From NCBI GenBank assembly GCA_002794465.1, contig MTSL01000044.1, forward strand, positions 1 to 7,467: DNA of 7,467 bases. Direction: 5' to 3'. The notes under the pieces were generated by a model. It had not been told where the DNA came from. It was given only the letters and a program-made list of their open reading frames with translations, and ran no database searches. This document shows, one piece after another, positions 6 to 6,104 of this stretch. Both the position numbers and the translations under genes were made by a program. The stretch is from Paramicrosporidium saccamoebae KSL3. Its lineage: Eukaryota; Fungi; Cryptomycota. Each line of letters starts with the position of its first letter. Position 1 is the stretch's first letter.

Positions 6-115
6 CTAGAATAGTATAGATACACATCACATCTCACTGTCCTCAAATACCCCGCTAATCCATCCATTCTATCACACAAATACCCAACTAATCAATCCTC
101 TGCCTCTACATCACA
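6..115 (+). repeat. Left copy of an imperfect inverted repeat (partner 1642..1709), with an internal 33-nt duplication
   Basis: 31..52 (atctcactgtcctcaaataccc) is the exact reverse complement of 1668..1689. 77..94 matches 1659..1676 exactly. Flanking blocks match 17/19, 12/14 and 11/12. The copy may extend past the window start. Confidence 0.9.
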
Positions 116-183
116 CTTTGCTCCTGGTCTGTAGTTAGTTATACACCCCCTAACGCTGTGTCATGCCAATCCGATAAAATTGC

Positions 184-1544
184 TTATTTATTGTGCGGGT
201 CGTATCTATCAACAGCGGGACCGGGGACAGTCTTCCCATCCTTCCCAACCACCAATACACCAATTAAGGCTGGTAATTCCAATCTGGAAACACCCTCTCC
301 CAACAACTCCCAGTCCGTCTCCTCAGTCAACGGCGCCAGATAGAAATCTCTAATTGCCCTCCCCGGATCATGCGCAATCACCGCCCATCTATTATGTTCC
401 GTCAAATATGATATTATAGTTTCTAAGGCGCCTGCTTCATCAGACAGATGGAAAAAAAGCACATCCCGGCTACTGCTGCCAGCGCAGATCTGTCGCACAT
501 AGTCCGAGGCAGTCTTAATAGGGATCCTACCCGAAATGTGCAAATTATGTGGGAGATATTTGAGGAGCGTCTGGTTAGTGTGCGGTCGATTAGGGGAATA
601 CAGAAAAGTCCCCTCCGCCGGAAATCTGCCCAGTTCTGGGAGATAAATTTTACCCAGCCAGCTAGAGTCACTGCTCAACGACCGCATCAACACGCTTGCC
701 GATGCCACTGTGTCTGGATATACTGCTTCCTTATCCCCCATTGGCAAGAAATCTTCTCCTTTGTGCGTTTTCTTTACAAAGCCACTCTCAATGCTTCCGT
801 CGGGGATGGTGAGCTGGGTTATTGATTGTTCCCGAACAGTCCTAATCACCTCAGCAACATCCTCATTTGCCATTTCCTGGGGCGTCATTTCCACGAGCCG
901 GGTAGAGTCGATGGATCCTGTGAAAAGCAGCCTGCGCAATCGGTCATTCTTTGGATCCTTCAGGTTGAATTGCAGAGTGCGGTACTTTGCCTTGTATTTT
1001 GTTCCGCATCGTGTGGCCTCACTGGAACCATGCTGCTCGGGTGTCTCGTCGGCAAGTTTTGCAAAAATGGCAGCTTCAATGGCTGTCGCCAACTCTGTGT
1101 GGTTTTTATACTTGGTATCCTCTGGTTGATCGTCCCAAAATCCAGATAGAACATTGGCAAGGCCTTCCGTTACAGTCTTCCTCACGGGGTCCTCGTCTAC
1201 TCTGTAGTTTGTCACCTTTGGTTGCGGGACAGTCTAAATAATGGTCAAATAAACTGACCATATGATACTCGCATCCTTTTGGGTGCTGCTTCGCTACTGT
1301 TCCGCCTGCTTTTTTGAGAGGAGCTATCCAGTGACTCGGTGCTTTTCTTGGGGCTCTTCTCGCACGGAGGACAGCGGTACTCTTTCAAGCTGTCCAGTGC
1401 ATCTGGTGATACTCCAACGCAGTCAATGTGGTACCTACCGTCACAAATCTTTGTCTAGAGGTACCATTCATCACAGTAATTACATTGGATCATAACACTG
1501 CCATTATCAGGCTGCCGACATGTACAGAAAACTGGCTCGCCCAT
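184..1544 (-). CDS. BYE1: PHD finger + TFIIS central domain + SPOC domain transcription factor (Bye1/DIDO1/PHF3 family), 431 aa; exons 1544-1465, 1434-1269, 1233-184
   Basis: Splicing GT-AG introns at 1464-1435 (30 nt) and 1268-1234 (35 nt) gives MGEPVFCTCRQPDNGSVMIQCNYCDEWYHIDCVGVSPDALDSLKEYRCPPC (C4HC3 PHD). This joins in frame to the 343-aa ORF carrying TFIIS-M (KYKAKYRTLQFNLKDPKN...MTPQEMAN) and SPOC-like (WLGKIYLP...LHISGRIP...DFYLAP) segments. No in-frame ATG lies between 1544 and the upstream in-frame stop. Confidence 0.88.
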
Positions 1545-1641
1545 TCCCGCCGAGCTTTCCAAAAGGAATAAGATTGAAAATGTAATTTTATCGTTTACTA
1601 AGAATGTCGGGTAGCGATGGATTATATGAGATTGGTTCTGT

Positions 1642-1709
1642 TGTGACGTAGAGAAGACTGATTAGTTGGGTATTTGAGGACAGTGAGATATGTATCCATA
1701 CTATTTTAG
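1642..1709 (-). repeat. Right copy (68 bp) of the inverted repeat, 97 nt upstream of the BYE1-like ATG
   Basis: The reverse complement ctaaaatagtatggatacatatctcactgtcctcaaatacccaactaatcagtcttctctacgtcaca aligns to 6..115 with 62 identities in the four aligned blocks (67 columns) and three indels. Confidence 0.9.
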
Positions 1710-1867: not shown

Positions 1868-2395
1868 CTATTCCTTCTTATCAGATTCGACAATATTCTC
1901 TTTTATCAAGAGTGTCTCCAATTCTCCATTTTTGTGCATGTCCATTATAATATCACAGCCACCAACAAAATTTCCCTTTACAAATACCTGTGGAATAGTT
2001 GGCCAAGAGCTACGACATTAAATCACATGCGAAATTACGTGAATTTCTTGACTTCTGAGCGAATGTCCTCGTCTTCAAGGACGTTAATAGCAGTAACTTT
2101 GGGAACTTTTTGAAAATCGAGTATCTGGCACACTGCACGACTAAAGCCGCACTACCGGTTATTGGGCATACAAATAATGTACCATGGGGCTGCGAGGAGT
2201 GCCCTTCATGAATATCACCACGTCGTTATCTCTCACAATCTACAAAGCAAGTCACGCCTGGCGTACTTGCAAGTACCTGCTCGACAAAACTCCTCGCTGC
2301 ATCCTTAGAGTATGGCCTCGAAAACTATCGGTTTAGCGACTGACCAAAGTTACAAGCAAAGCGCCGGGCCGTAGCAAATTTGAAACCCGCAACAT
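1868..2395 (-). CDS. GRX5: Mitochondrial monothiol (CGFS) glutaredoxin, 133 aa; exons 2395-2354, 2324-2277, 2239-2183, 2151-2039, 2009-1868
   Basis: Four GT-AG introns (2353-2325, 2276-2240, 2182-2152, 2038-2010) give [106 protein letters not shown]...DKKE*. It has the [18 protein letters not shown] and GGCD motifs and an Arg-rich, acid-free presequence. Confidence 0.95.
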
Positions 2396-2787
2396 GACAA
2401 AAATTCTATTTTTGTTTTGCGTAATTATTTTACAGAATTCCAAGTAACCGAAATCGGTGACGACTCACTGTGGTCAAGAGCGTCCCGTGGTGATACGATA
2501 GCCTACGCACCGGAACTCCTTATCGTGACACTTTAAGCAAGAGCCCTTTTTATTAAATATCATCTTCATTTATGGGGCGAGACTCAACATCAGATCGTAG
2601 CAACCAATGGGAACTGCTAGGTCTTGAACATGGCGAGTTGGCTCACCACGTCTCAAAGAGCATCGTGAATATTCCCCCTGATTACCGCAAACGTTTGGCG
2701 GAAAAGATTTTATTTATCAGCCCGCAGATACCATGTCCTTGAATCAGGCCATTCAATTCACTAATATTTGATTTTATAATATTGTGA

Positions 2788-3225
2788 CTAGTCAGCGAGG
2801 TAGGCTCTTACTTTATCGAGCACTTGTACCGCAAGCTTTCGGAAATTAGGCAATCGCAGATTATCTTTGATCAAGAAAAGGACGGCCAGGATGCCAGCAA
2901 GTACCACCACTAAATAGAACAGGTCGGCTATTCTCTTGCTGAGAAAGATCCCCAGGAGCGCGATAGACCACCACGGAAACCAACGTCTACGTTTGTGATC
3001 CTTTGGCTGGTTGACTTTTGCAGAAGTAGGCGGGTCTTTGCGTGCAGACGAAGTGTCTCGATCAATAATCGTTGTTACAGTGCATAAACCGGGAATTGTA
3101 AAGGTATATGACTCTTCTAGGACCTTGTTAGTTTCTGAGGCGCGATACATTTCCCGTGCAGTGTGGGGGGGTCGAGATTTATATCCGCCCTCGGCCTCGT
3201 GTCTAGTCTTGATTGGTTGAGCCAT
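2788..3225 (-). CDS. Orphan ORF C, 145 aa, intronless, probable membrane protein with two hydrophobic segments near the C-terminus
   Basis: First ATG at 3225 in good context (atcATGG); the ORF track start at 3237 is GTG. KRRR precedes WFPWWSIALLGIFLS and LFYLVVVLAGILAVLFLI. ATTATAAAA lies 7 nt after the TAG, the same word found after the GRX5 stop. No family recognised. Confidence 0.6.
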   Translation of the reverse strand: MAQPIKTRHEAEGGYKSRPPHTAREMYRASETNKVLEESYTFTIPGLCTVTTIIDRDTSSARKDPPTSAKVNQPKDHKRRRWFPWWSIALLGIFLSKRIADLFYLVVVLAGILAVLFLIKDNLRLPNFRKLAVQVLDKVRAYLAD

Positions 3226-3498
3226 GATGTTTGACACTCGGTATCAATATAATAAACAACTTTGTGCCATTCATCTAGTAGCAATTGCACTGTGACTTGT
3301 GTCAAGTAGAACTGTAAAGTTAATATAAGACAGACTGCTGGTCATAACCTAGATGGCTATCCCACAAGTCAGGTTGGCCTTAAAAGGAGGCACGCCGTTT
3401 AGTAAAGTTTAGGTTAGGATCTGTTCTACCACATACATACCCGTAGGATGATACTTACAGGCCATAAATCATAAGCAAAGATTGCGTTATACATTCAT

Positions 3499-3807
3499 TT
3501 AGAAATTACCACTATTCTGATACATGTGGAACGTTGAAGCAGCAAATCCAGCCCAATCAGTGCCTGCAGGACTCTCTCGCTTAACACTCTCTTCTTTGTA
3601 AATTCGACCATTGCGACAGGTGGTCACAATAGTCTTGACAGTGCTTCCTTGATTGATTACTGTGACTTCACGCCACCATCCCGGTCCCTCCTGTCTTGTT
3701 GTGCGCTTCGTCACAGGAGGATTTGCTTGCGGATGGCTCCAGTCGCGTGATGTATCTCTTTGATGCTGTCCTCTCCACTTTCCCTTCTGATTGCAACCAT
3801 AAAACAT
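3499..3807 (-). CDS. Orphan ORF B, 102 aa, intronless, paralogue of ORF A
   Basis: First in-frame ATG at 3807 (the track's 3831 is GTG, with an in-frame TGA just upstream). It shares W-x-HP, TK..T..EGPG..R..T, R.GRI..E, E.P.G and WA with ORF A: 21 identities in 56 columns by hand. Confidence 0.72.
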   Translation of the reverse strand: MFYGCNQKGKWRGQHQRDTSRDWSHPQANPPVTKRTTRQEGPGWWREVTVINQGSTVKTIVTTCRNGRIYKEESVKRESPAGTDWAGFAASTFHMYQNSGNF

Positions 3808-3827
3808 TGGTGGGAATTCTGGGGTTA

Positions 3828-3869
3828 ACACTCGTGTTCATATATATATAGATGGAGAAATCCGTGTCA
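3828..3869 (-). promoter_or_regulatory. Putative core promoter of ORF B: TGACACGG (3869-3862), TATATATATA (3850-3841), CGAGTGT (3834-3828)
   Basis: The motif and TATA element end 55 and 34 nt upstream of the ATG, versus 56 and 34 nt for ORF A. Function is inferred. Confidence 0.5.
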
Positions 3870-3896
3870 TCACTGGATTGGTCAAATATTATTTAT

Positions 3897-4313
3897 TCAC
3901 CAGTATAAGAATTCATCGAAAAAGTTCTTTGTGATTCCATACGCCCATTCAGCCCATCCTTGTGGCCGCTCTTCATACGTCTTGCGCTCTGTCGTAATAC
4001 GACCATCACGATTTGTCTCGGTGATCACGGTTACACGACCGGCGTGATCTCGAAAGGTAGTAATTGTCCTTTTGTATCCTGGCCCTTCCTCGGTAGTGAT
4101 CTCTTTGGTCATGTCCGGTGGATGCATCCAGGAGGGTTCTTGGTCATTATCCGCATTTTGAGAATTGTTAACACCATAAGTATTGTATGCATTGTAAGCG
4201 TTGCGAGCCTCTTCATTCCACAATGGTGGCGAAAAGGTAATTACACCCCACGGGGTGCTACACTGCACTGACTCGCCATGTACTGGCATGTTGATCGGCT
4301 GACACTTGAACAT
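3897..4313 (-). CDS. Orphan ORF A, 138 aa, intronless, paralogue of ORF B
   Basis: ATG-started open frame, stop TGA fused to AATAAA, TATAAAA 34 nt upstream, and protein similarity to ORF B. No family recognised. Confidence 0.78.
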   Translation of the reverse strand: MFKCQPINMPVHGESVQCSTPWGVITFSPPLWNEEARNAYNAYNTYGVNNSQNADNDQEPSWMHPPDMTKEITTEEGPGYKRTITTFRDHAGRVTVITETNRDGRITTERKTYEERPQGWAEWAYGITKNFFDEFLYW

Positions 4314-4346
4314 TTGAAGAATGTTGACCCCAGGGCTATCCTTTTG

Positions 4347-4376
4347 TTTTATAGTCAGGCATTGTTAGCCGTGTCA
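4347..4376 (-). promoter_or_regulatory. Putative core promoter of ORF A: TGACACGG (4376-4369) and TATAAAA (4353-4347)
   Basis: Canonical TATA box plus an 8-mer shared with ORF B at an equivalent distance. Confidence 0.5.
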
Positions 4377-4431
4377 CCTTGCAATTGGTAGCAATATCCT
4401 TGAGTAATTAAATTTAACGACCCCAGTACGG

Positions 4432-4515
4432 GTCACTATGGTCGAGCGGTCTAAGACGCAGCACTCAAGATGCTGTCTCCGTAAGGGGGCGTGGGTTCGA
4501 ATCCCACTGGTGACA
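4432..4515 (+). tRNA. tRNA-Leu(CAA), intronless, long variable arm, no encoded CCA
   Basis: Acceptor GTCACTA/TGGTGAC, D stem GTC/GAC, anticodon stem CAGCA/TGCTG with loop CT-CAA-GA (anticodon 4466..4468), variable arm TCTCC-GTAA-GGGGG, T arm GTGGG-TTCGAAT-CCCAC, discriminator A. Confidence 0.97.
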
Positions 4516-4520
4516 CATTC

Positions 4521-4525
4521 TTTTT
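4521..4525 (+). terminator. Pol III oligo(T) terminator of the tRNA
   Basis: TTTTT begins 5 nt after the discriminator base. Confidence 0.8.
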
Positions 4526-4829
4526 AGAATTTTGTAACTTGATTCACATTATACATAATCGAGATACATTACGGTAATGCAATTGTATTAACAGCTGTGT
4601 GACGTAGGGCTCTATTATTTACATACAAAAACCATTATCGCACACGACGCACATGCCCAACGAGAGCTGTCCTTTTATTGGATATTTTCCGTCATTTATA
4701 AGGCAAATTCTTTCACCCGATCACCATCCTTTAATTTCAAACTGTTTAGCCACGCACCGACTACTGATTGCTCAATTTTAACAAAAGAATGACCTACCGC
4801 TACTGGTTCCAGGGCTGGAACTTTTCACC

Positions 4830-5965
4830 ATGGGAATCATTGAAAAGATAGCCGATATTGAACGAGAGATTGCCCGTACGCAAAAGAACAAAGGTACAAT
4901 TACTACATATGCCACTGAAATTGTGTAGCCACAGAATATCACTTGGGAATTCTAAAGGCCAAGCTAGCAAAGTACCGCGCCGAACTGTTGGACATCAAGT
5001 CGGGCGGTGGAGGTGGGAAAGGGGAAGGCTTTGACGTAATGAAATCAGGCGACGCGCGTGTCGCGCTGATCGGCTTTCCATCAGTTGGAAAATCCACCCT
5101 CCTCAACAAAGTGACCAAAACGGAAAGTGCCGCGGCTGCATACGAATTCACCACCCTGACGTGCATCCCAGGAAACATTGAATACGAAGGCGCCAATATC
5201 CAACTGCTGGATCTACCCGGGATTATCGAGGGAGCAGCCCAGGGAAAGGGACGAGGAAAACAGGTGATTGCGGTGGCACGGACAGCCGACTTGGTGCTTA
5301 TGATGTTGGATGCAACCCGTGGACCTCAGCAGCGTCGACTATTAGAAGCAGAATTAGAGGCAGTGGGGATCCGATTGAACCGCGTCCGACCAAACATTTC
5401 GTTCCGGACCAAAAGCGCCGGTGGAATTGGCTTCACAGCAACGGTGCGACAATCGTATCTGACAGAAAAGTTTGTGCAGACAATGTTGCACGAATACAAA
5501 ATCTTCCACGCCGAAGTCATTGTGCGGGAAGACTGCACTATGGACGATTTCATTGACGTAGTGGTGGGCAATCGGAAATATTTGAAATGCCTGTATTGCT
5601 ACAACAAGATTGATCAGATTGGCATGGAGGATTTGGATCGGCTGGCAAGGGAGCCCAACACGGTAGTGGTGAGCTGCGAAATGAACCTGAATTTGGACTT
5701 TTTAATACGTCGGATTTGGGAGGAACTGGGTCTTTTGCGACTTTACACAAAGAAGCGGGGAGAATATCCCGACTTTGAAGATGGAGTCATTATCCGAGCG
5801 GGATCTAGCGTAGAGCATCTCTGCCACCGCATCCATCGACAGCTTCCATCAATTTTCAAGTTTGCACTGGTATGGGGAACAAGTGCAAAGCATCAGCCAC
5901 AAAAAGTAGGAATACAGCATCGCCTACAAAATGAAGATGTGATCCAAATTGTAAAGAAGCAATAA
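4830..5965 (+). CDS. DRG2: Developmentally regulated GTP-binding protein 2 (OBG/DRG family with TGS domain), 366 aa; exons 4830-4893, 4929-5965
   Basis: Removing the intron 4894-4928 (35 nt) gives [38 protein letters not shown], the DRG2/Rbg2-type N-terminus. Motifs: G1 GFPSVGKS, G2 YEFTT, G3 DLPG, G4 NKID, C-terminal TGS (WGTSAKHQPQKVG...EDVIQIVKK). Confidence 0.95.
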
Positions 5966-5985: not shown

Positions 5986-6104
5986 GTAGTTTGGATTGTA
6001 GTTGGATTAGAGCTTGGATTGTAGTTTGGATTAGAGCTTGGATTATAGTTTGGATTAGAGCTTGGACTGTAGTTTGGATTGGAGCTTGGATTGGAGTTTG
6101 GGCT
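5986..6104 (+). repeat. Minisatellite of ten ~12-bp units, mostly alternating GTAGTTTGGATT / AGAGCTTGGATT (24-bp higher-order repeat)
   Basis: Units start at 5986, 5998 (11 nt), 6009, 6021, 6033, 6045, 6057, 6069, 6081 and 6093. A degenerate unit lies at 5974..5985. Confidence 0.95.

Follow-up and report, generated by a model that had tools for sequence, protein, structure and literature searches.

A diverged inverted repeat brackets a Bye1/PHF3-like gene at the left end of contig MTSL01000044.1 of Paramicrosporidium saccamoebae KSL3, an amoeba parasite of the Rozellomycota (assembly GCA_002794465.1); the whole contig, 7,467 nucleotides (nt) long, was analysed here and is referred to as the window. 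The two arms of the repeat are homologous, and we see a little better than an even chance that they arose when a spacer sequence of about 70 bp, strand-asymmetric and prone to slippage, was recently duplicated nearby in inverted orientation. The duplication would probably be neutral, and it left the gene unmoved and unflipped. Read in this way, the repeat is one further case of small-scale inverted duplication between the genes of a compact genome, and nothing points to capture of the gene, to mobility or to switching. An earlier sequence-only reading of the same DNA had noticed the repeat and proposed that it represents the ends of a mobile element that captured the gene, the borders of an invertible or recently inverted cassette, or two copies of a dispersed repeat. 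It was partly supported: the sequence observation and the identity of the gene stood, while gene capture and recent inversion did not.

The repeat is made up of the following parts:
6-115, unstranded: left arm, composed of a prefix (6-43), unit 1 (44-76) and unit 2 (77-115)
44-115, unstranded: tandem duplication inside the left arm, with units of 33 and 39 nt whose cores are CAAATACCCCGCTAATCCATCC and CAAATACCCAACTAATCAATCC
1642-1709, unstranded: right arm, composed of a prefix and one unit

The arms were recovered by a repeat search of the window, as the inverted pairs I1 (28-79 / 1641-1692) and I2 (77-101 / 1652-1676), and by gapped alignment of 6-115 (+) with the reverse complement of 1642-1709, which gave 62 identities, six mismatches and gaps of 5, 33 and 4 nt (identity 62/68, ~91%). 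Alignment of the right arm with the remaining window scored 31, compared with 10.5 +/- 1.0 and a maximum of 14 in 200 Markov-1 random windows, which places it about 20 standard deviations (SD) above the null. Because this score is far above those of the random windows, the arm pair is a true homology, and the repeat seen from the letters alone is real. The longest exact word common to both arms was the 22-mer ATCTCACTGTCCTCAAATACCC, found at 31-52; a perfect 22-mer had also been described in the sequence-only reading. The earlier alignment had counted 62/67 with five substitutions; its 62 matches were reproduced, and its mismatch count was one column short. All six mismatches are transitions (G/A, A/G, C/T, A/G, C/T, A/G), so that the earlier statement that only transitions occur extends to the sixth. 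RIP-like mutation (repeat-induced point mutation) was rejected as their source, the six transitions being mixed in direction and context; with transitions favoured 2:1, a full set of six would arise with a probability of ~0.09, which is not evidence for this process. No third copy of an arm was detected by an alignment search over the 7,467-bp contig.

The arms carry head-to-tail units in variable number, two in the left arm and one in the right. The 33-nt gap of the alignment is due to the tandem duplication inside the left arm, which consists of the prefix and two units where the right arm has the prefix and one. The left-arm units are 86% identical (44-65 versus 77-98), and the single unit of the right arm is closer to unit 2 than to unit 1. 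Tandem Repeats Finder (TRF), at a score of 30, did not call the two-unit stretch as an array. The 5- and 4-nt gaps fall in runs rich in CA, where slippage would be expected to leave them. Each arm has a strand with hardly any G: on the plus strand the left arm is G-poor (6 G in 110 nt, GC skew -0.69) and the right arm C-poor (6 C in 68 nt, GC skew +0.60).

Only 5 nt separate the left arm from the contig end; towards the Bye1-like gene, 68 nt lie between it and the stop codon (184-186). The right arm is located inside the spacer between this gene and a GRX5-like gene; in the direction of transcription, the GRX5 stop codon precedes it by 158 nt and the Bye1-like ATG follows it after 97 nt. The distances of 68 and 97 nt had been given exactly in the sequence-only reading. 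As the window is the whole contig, the outer limit of the left arm is only provisional so close to the assembly end, and this arm may be truncated. Terminal inverted repeats are absent from each arm taken singly, the right-arm termini CTAAAATAG... and ...CGTCACA not being complementary, and there is no repeat between the flanks outside the arms, which are TAGTC on the left (only 5 nt before the contig end) and AATTG on the right. The single-unit right arm alone has a predicted fold of only -3.9 kcal/mol, and the two arms paired with each other form a predicted duplex of -94 kcal/mol. No known RNA or tRNA-derived element was found in the arms with Rfam (E<=1) or ARAGORN.

That the gene was neither moved nor flipped is suggested by its structure and by its neighbours. 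The features that adjoin the right arm are:
184-1544, minus strand: Bye1/PHF3-like gene of 431 amino acids (aa), with exons 1544-1465, 1434-1269 and 1233-184
1545-1867, unstranded: GRX5-Bye1 spacer of 323 bp, which holds the right arm
1868-2395, minus strand: GRX5-like gene for a monothiol (CGFS) glutaredoxin, spliced (Pfam Glutaredoxin, E = 8e-18)

The Bye1-like gene has introns of 30 nt (1464-1435) and 35 nt (1268-1234), and its 431-aa model matched the Pfam domains PHD (E = 7e-9), TFIIS_M (1e-23) and SPOC (8e-12), a combination that is the Bye1/PHF3 architecture and shows the gene to be complete. The long open reading frame at 184-1215 on the minus strand matched PSACC_00453, the deposited model, at 100%. 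This model has 360 aa, starts at 1471 and is without the PHD finger, which is restored by a start at 1544 together with the 30-nt intron. The PHD exon is conserved in the relatives L005 and L007, and the ATG-1544 model of the sequence-only reading is therefore better than the deposited one; the Pfam domains and the PHD exon of the relatives bore out both this start and the Bye1-like identity.

The GRX5-like gene directly precedes the Bye1-like gene and is read from the same strand. Gene order around Bye1 in the relatives was as follows:
L005/L006 (Logan), 48% protein identity: GRX5 -> Bye1 <- TUP1
L007 (JGI), 49% protein identity: GRX5 -> Bye1 <- TUP1
L008 (NCBI GCA_020047435.1), 35% protein identity: Bye1 <- TUP1 (GRX5 not called or checked)
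L009 (Logan), 40% protein identity: GRX5 -> Bye1 <- TUP1
L002 (JGI), the closest relative: Bye1 <- TUP1, on a contig that begins within the Bye1 gene

The Bye1 protein of L002 is 87% identical by BLASTP, and 91% over 292 aligned codons, with 84% identity at the nucleotide level. Bye1 has one and the same orientation across the five relatives, and DRG and IDH are nearby in all these contigs. A comparison of its orientation with that of GRX5, proposed in the sequence-only reading, showed no change in L005/L006, L007 and L009. Judged by this gene order, the Bye1-like gene is at its ancestral place and in its ancestral orientation relative to GRX5 and DRG/IDH. The conserved order and orientation therefore contradict a Pack-MULE-like capture and a fixed recent inversion. 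In L009 the DRG-IDH block (1996-3979) is inverted relative to Bye1, in this relative only, and the GRX5-Bye1-TUP1 triad is unchanged. The loci L010/L011 (closest relative) are collinear with positions 2788-5309 of the window.

The same synteny predicts a convergent TUP1 orthologue just left of position 1. No P. saccamoebae protein was found among the best 120 of 284 protein matches to the C-terminus of the L002 TUP1, where an orthologue of ~87% identity should rank first, and the gene may be unassembled, split or unannotated. The repeat touches the assembly end and thereby points to a gap in the assembled sequence of P. saccamoebae, probably in the Bye1-TUP1 spacer.

The repeat itself is not shared with the relatives. 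No inverted repeat brackets Bye1 in L005 or L007, and the arm motif CAAATACCC(NN)CTAATC was absent from ~75 kb of the relatives' loci, corresponding spacers included. The Jukes-Cantor distance between the arms is 0.094, far below the synonymous divergence (dS) of 0.62 between P. saccamoebae and L002 in the Bye1-like gene (292 codons); for this reason the repeat would be young or recently homogenised and lineage-specific and, if the arms are neutral, younger than the split from the L002 organism. The GRX5-Bye1 spacer is ~100-115 bp long in L005 and L007 and ~200 bp longer in the window, which is compatible with an insertion there; spacer lengths vary in the clade.

In the local duplication that we favour, a stretch of ~70 nt would have been copied from one spacer and placed, reversed, in the next spacer at a distance of 1.5 kb, perhaps by template switching or by templated repair of a break. 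Replication slippage would then have doubled the 33-nt unit in the left copy and introduced the 4-5-nt indels in the CA-rich runs. We infer the duplication mechanism, the neutrality and the copy number of two from the arms and their setting. The arms probably have no function beyond that of a weak substrate for rare recombination. Local copying is favoured, by a small margin, over two insertions of a dispersed repeat, because the genome is reportedly almost free of interspersed repeats and because an adjacent pair would need tens of copies.

Several points weigh against local copying. The copy count of two covers only this 7,467-bp contig. The left arm is at the contig end; sequence at such ends is often tandem or present in several copies, as would be the case for a repeat family or for an array that continues further. 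A tandem array beyond the contig end, like one found in the Bye1-TUP1 spacer of L002, would explain the end equally well. The high similarity of the arms could stem from selection or gene conversion and not from youth. The left spacer has no significant similarity to the orthologous L002 Bye1-TUP1 spacer, which is not alignable with the window, and neither junction microhomology nor the polarity of source and target is established.

The published genome of P. saccamoebae, a probably diploid organism, is a metagenome-derived Velvet assembly (k = 53, 80-nt reads) of 7.3 Mb in 221 scaffolds, with 76% gene space. The genome paper gives repeats as 0.53% of the genome, mostly simple or low-complexity, and does not mention transposons; a literature search on repeats or transposons of this genome returned nothing beyond the 0.53% figure. 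The best surviving alternative, which we regard as possible though clearly less probable than local copying, is that the arms are two members of a dispersed family of short repeats at low to moderate copy number, with the gene between them incidental, as in one of the options of the sequence-only reading. The left arm coincides with the contig end, and repeats typically break assemblies of the k = 53, 80-nt kind; however, the arms share only a 22-mer and could not themselves break a k = 53 graph. The difference in unit number between the arms resembles minisatellite-bearing elements, and a 55-nt element present in three L005 spacers demonstrates that short dispersed spacer repeats occur in the clade. 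Against this, no third copy is present in the other 5.7 kb of the contig, the reported repeat content is 0.53% and mostly simple, and with ~3,750 spacers in the genome an adjacent pair by chance needs several tens of copies. The lack of terminal inverted repeats in either arm, together with the fold of only -3.9 kcal/mol in the single-unit arm, also speaks against such a family and makes the label MITE-like (miniature inverted-repeat transposable element), used in the sequence-only reading, not apt. Exact-word scans of public collections gave only chance matches to arm words: one in the JGI metagenomes, on a bacterial contig, none in the GTDB genomes, and two 18-mers without extension in IMG/VR, all three collections probably being without this genome. 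If the family were real, this genome, reportedly almost devoid of interspersed repeats, would have its first one on record, a modest addition.

Other repeats were observed in spacers of this contig and of the relatives. The Bye1-TUP1 spacer of L002 (929-1164) holds 13 copies of an 18-nt minisatellite, AGTAGTAATGAGAGGCAG, with 96% matches, and an array like this one would break a short-read assembly. Homology of the left arm, at its inner end, to this minisatellite was suggested by a shared word, AGAGGCAGAG, and by a MAFFT alignment, and was rejected with a score of 8 versus a null of 8.85 +/- 1.2. In the window itself, a minisatellite of 24 nt with a 12-nt sub-period (TTGGATTGTAGTTTGGATTAGAGC x 4.7) is located at 5988-6101 in the DRG-IDH spacer, directly after the DRG stop codon; it shares GGATTAG words with the arms, but a relationship was likewise rejected, the alignment scores of 6.5-9 being within the null range. 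Several minisatellites were found in L007. The ~55-nt element of L005 has the palindromic ends GCCAGACATTTT ... AAAATGTCTGGC, occurs in three spacers (1551-1605, 4416-4470 and 5795-5849) and may be a dispersed spacer hairpin element in the clade.

A role for the arms as functional cis-elements, either paired protein-binding or insulator/terminator elements or a double-stranded RNA (dsRNA) stem in a GRX5-Bye1 read-through transcript, appears unlikely. The arms contain three occurrences of the motif CAAATACCCNNCTAATC, each arm is oriented alike relative to the gene that reads inward (GRX5 and, by synteny, TUP1), the predicted duplex energy is -94 kcal/mol, and, for arms of old age, their similarity would exceed what neutral divergence to the nearest relative permits. 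However, the motif is absent from the ~75 kb of relatives' loci with the same spacers, neither L005 nor L007 has a bracketing repeat, and no Rfam family matches the arms. In addition, the right arm is probably upstream of the Bye1 transcription start, because the TATA-like CATATAATC sits between the arm and the Bye1 ATG. The support for a functional role is thus only geometric, with no conservation. It would be quite surprising if the arms acted as a pairing device, forming a ~68-bp stem around the Bye1-like gene, in a read-through transcript or in single-stranded DNA, that triggers dsRNA silencing or occasional inversion; if true, such a device would act on a chromatin/elongation regulator of an intranuclear parasite.

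We consider it very unlikely that recombination at the arms inverts, or has recently inverted, a 1.5-kb cassette, another of the options of the sequence-only reading. Inverted repeats do bracket one gene, and the arms could pair at -94 kcal/mol if single-stranded or co-transcribed. But the assembled orientation of Bye1 is the ancestral one relative to GRX5, DRG/IDH and TUP1, and flipping a whole gene along with its promoter region would have little effect. Among the genes of the contig (IDH, DRG, tRNA-Leu, three small proteins, GRX5 and Bye1-like), no recombinase was found, the remaining genome not having been searched. The homology amounts to 68 bp at 91%, with a longest perfect block of 22 bp, and in yeast recombination such short, diverged homology is a poor substrate.

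An assembly artefact, such as a fold-back or a chimeric tip at the contig end, would account for the left arm lying at the very edge of a contig assembled from short reads with a de Bruijn graph, but fold-backs give exact reverse complements; as the six transitions, two short indels and diverged 33-nt tandem duplication of the arms follow a pattern of biological divergence, we give this origin very little credence. Least credible of all is the first option of the sequence-only reading, in which the arms are the terminal inverted repeats (TIRs) of a non-autonomous Pack-MULE/foldback-like DNA element and the Bye1-like gene is its captured and transported cargo. In its favour, one gene alone is closely flanked by inverted repeats that enclose no transposase; but the cargo is a complete gene (PHD, TFIIS_M and SPOC) and not a fragment, its orientation and its TUP1 neighbour are kept in relatives down to 35% protein identity and its GRX5 neighbour down to 40%, so that it is ancestral at the site, TAGTC (5 nt on the left) does not repeat the AATTG on the right, and no transposons are reported in the genome paper.

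The remaining part of the contig includes the following features:
3499-3807 and 3897-4289, minus strand: small tandem paralogues of 102 and 130 aa, 38% identical over 73 aa
4432-4516, plus strand: tRNA-Leu(CAA) gene, between the small-protein genes and DRG (Rfam 58 bits, also ARAGORN)

A close metagenomic relative was the sole source of homologues of the two paralogues (P0140, 74% identity), indicating a lineage-specific family, and a protein search detected no further members in P. saccamoebae. None of the three small lineage-specific proteins of the contig matched Pfam. The position of the tRNA gene is conserved in L010/L011. The analysis also disclosed two annotation gaps next to the repeat: the deposited Bye1-like model misses the PHD finger, and the record carries no gene call for the neighbouring GRX5-like gene.

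Compared with known systems, the repeat resembles Pack-MULEs and other gene-carrying TIR elements in that inverted repeats flank a host-derived coding sequence with no transposase inside, but here the gene is complete and at its ancestral site, with no visible target-site duplication and no evidence of a TIR family or an autonomous partner. Invertible segments, such as those of the yeast 2-micron FLP/FRT system, bacterial invertons and the flip-flop of plastid inverted repeats, are likewise bracketed by inverted repeats; in contrast to these, the contig has no recombinase, the repeats are short and diverged, and only the ancestral orientation is seen across the relatives. The arms are similar to MITEs in their small size, their lack of coding sequence and their position between the genes of a compact genome, but each arm is without terminal inverted repeats of its own or a visible target-site duplication. 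They share with intergenic minisatellites a strand-asymmetric composition and a variable unit number (two tandem 33-39-nt units in the left arm versus one in the right), and minisatellites are present in the spacers of this contig and of its relatives; they differ in being 1.5 kb apart, inverted and not head-to-tail, and in having no significant similarity to the other minisatellites. With templated insertions and local inverted duplications of the fold-back, microhomology-mediated break-induced replication (MMBIR) or polymerase-theta type, the difference is that junction microhomology is not demonstrable here, the source copy is not identifiable and the mechanism is deduced from the outcome, whereas the likeness extends to tens of non-coding bases inverted within a few kb and to arms that are young, lineage-specific and free of mobile-element features.

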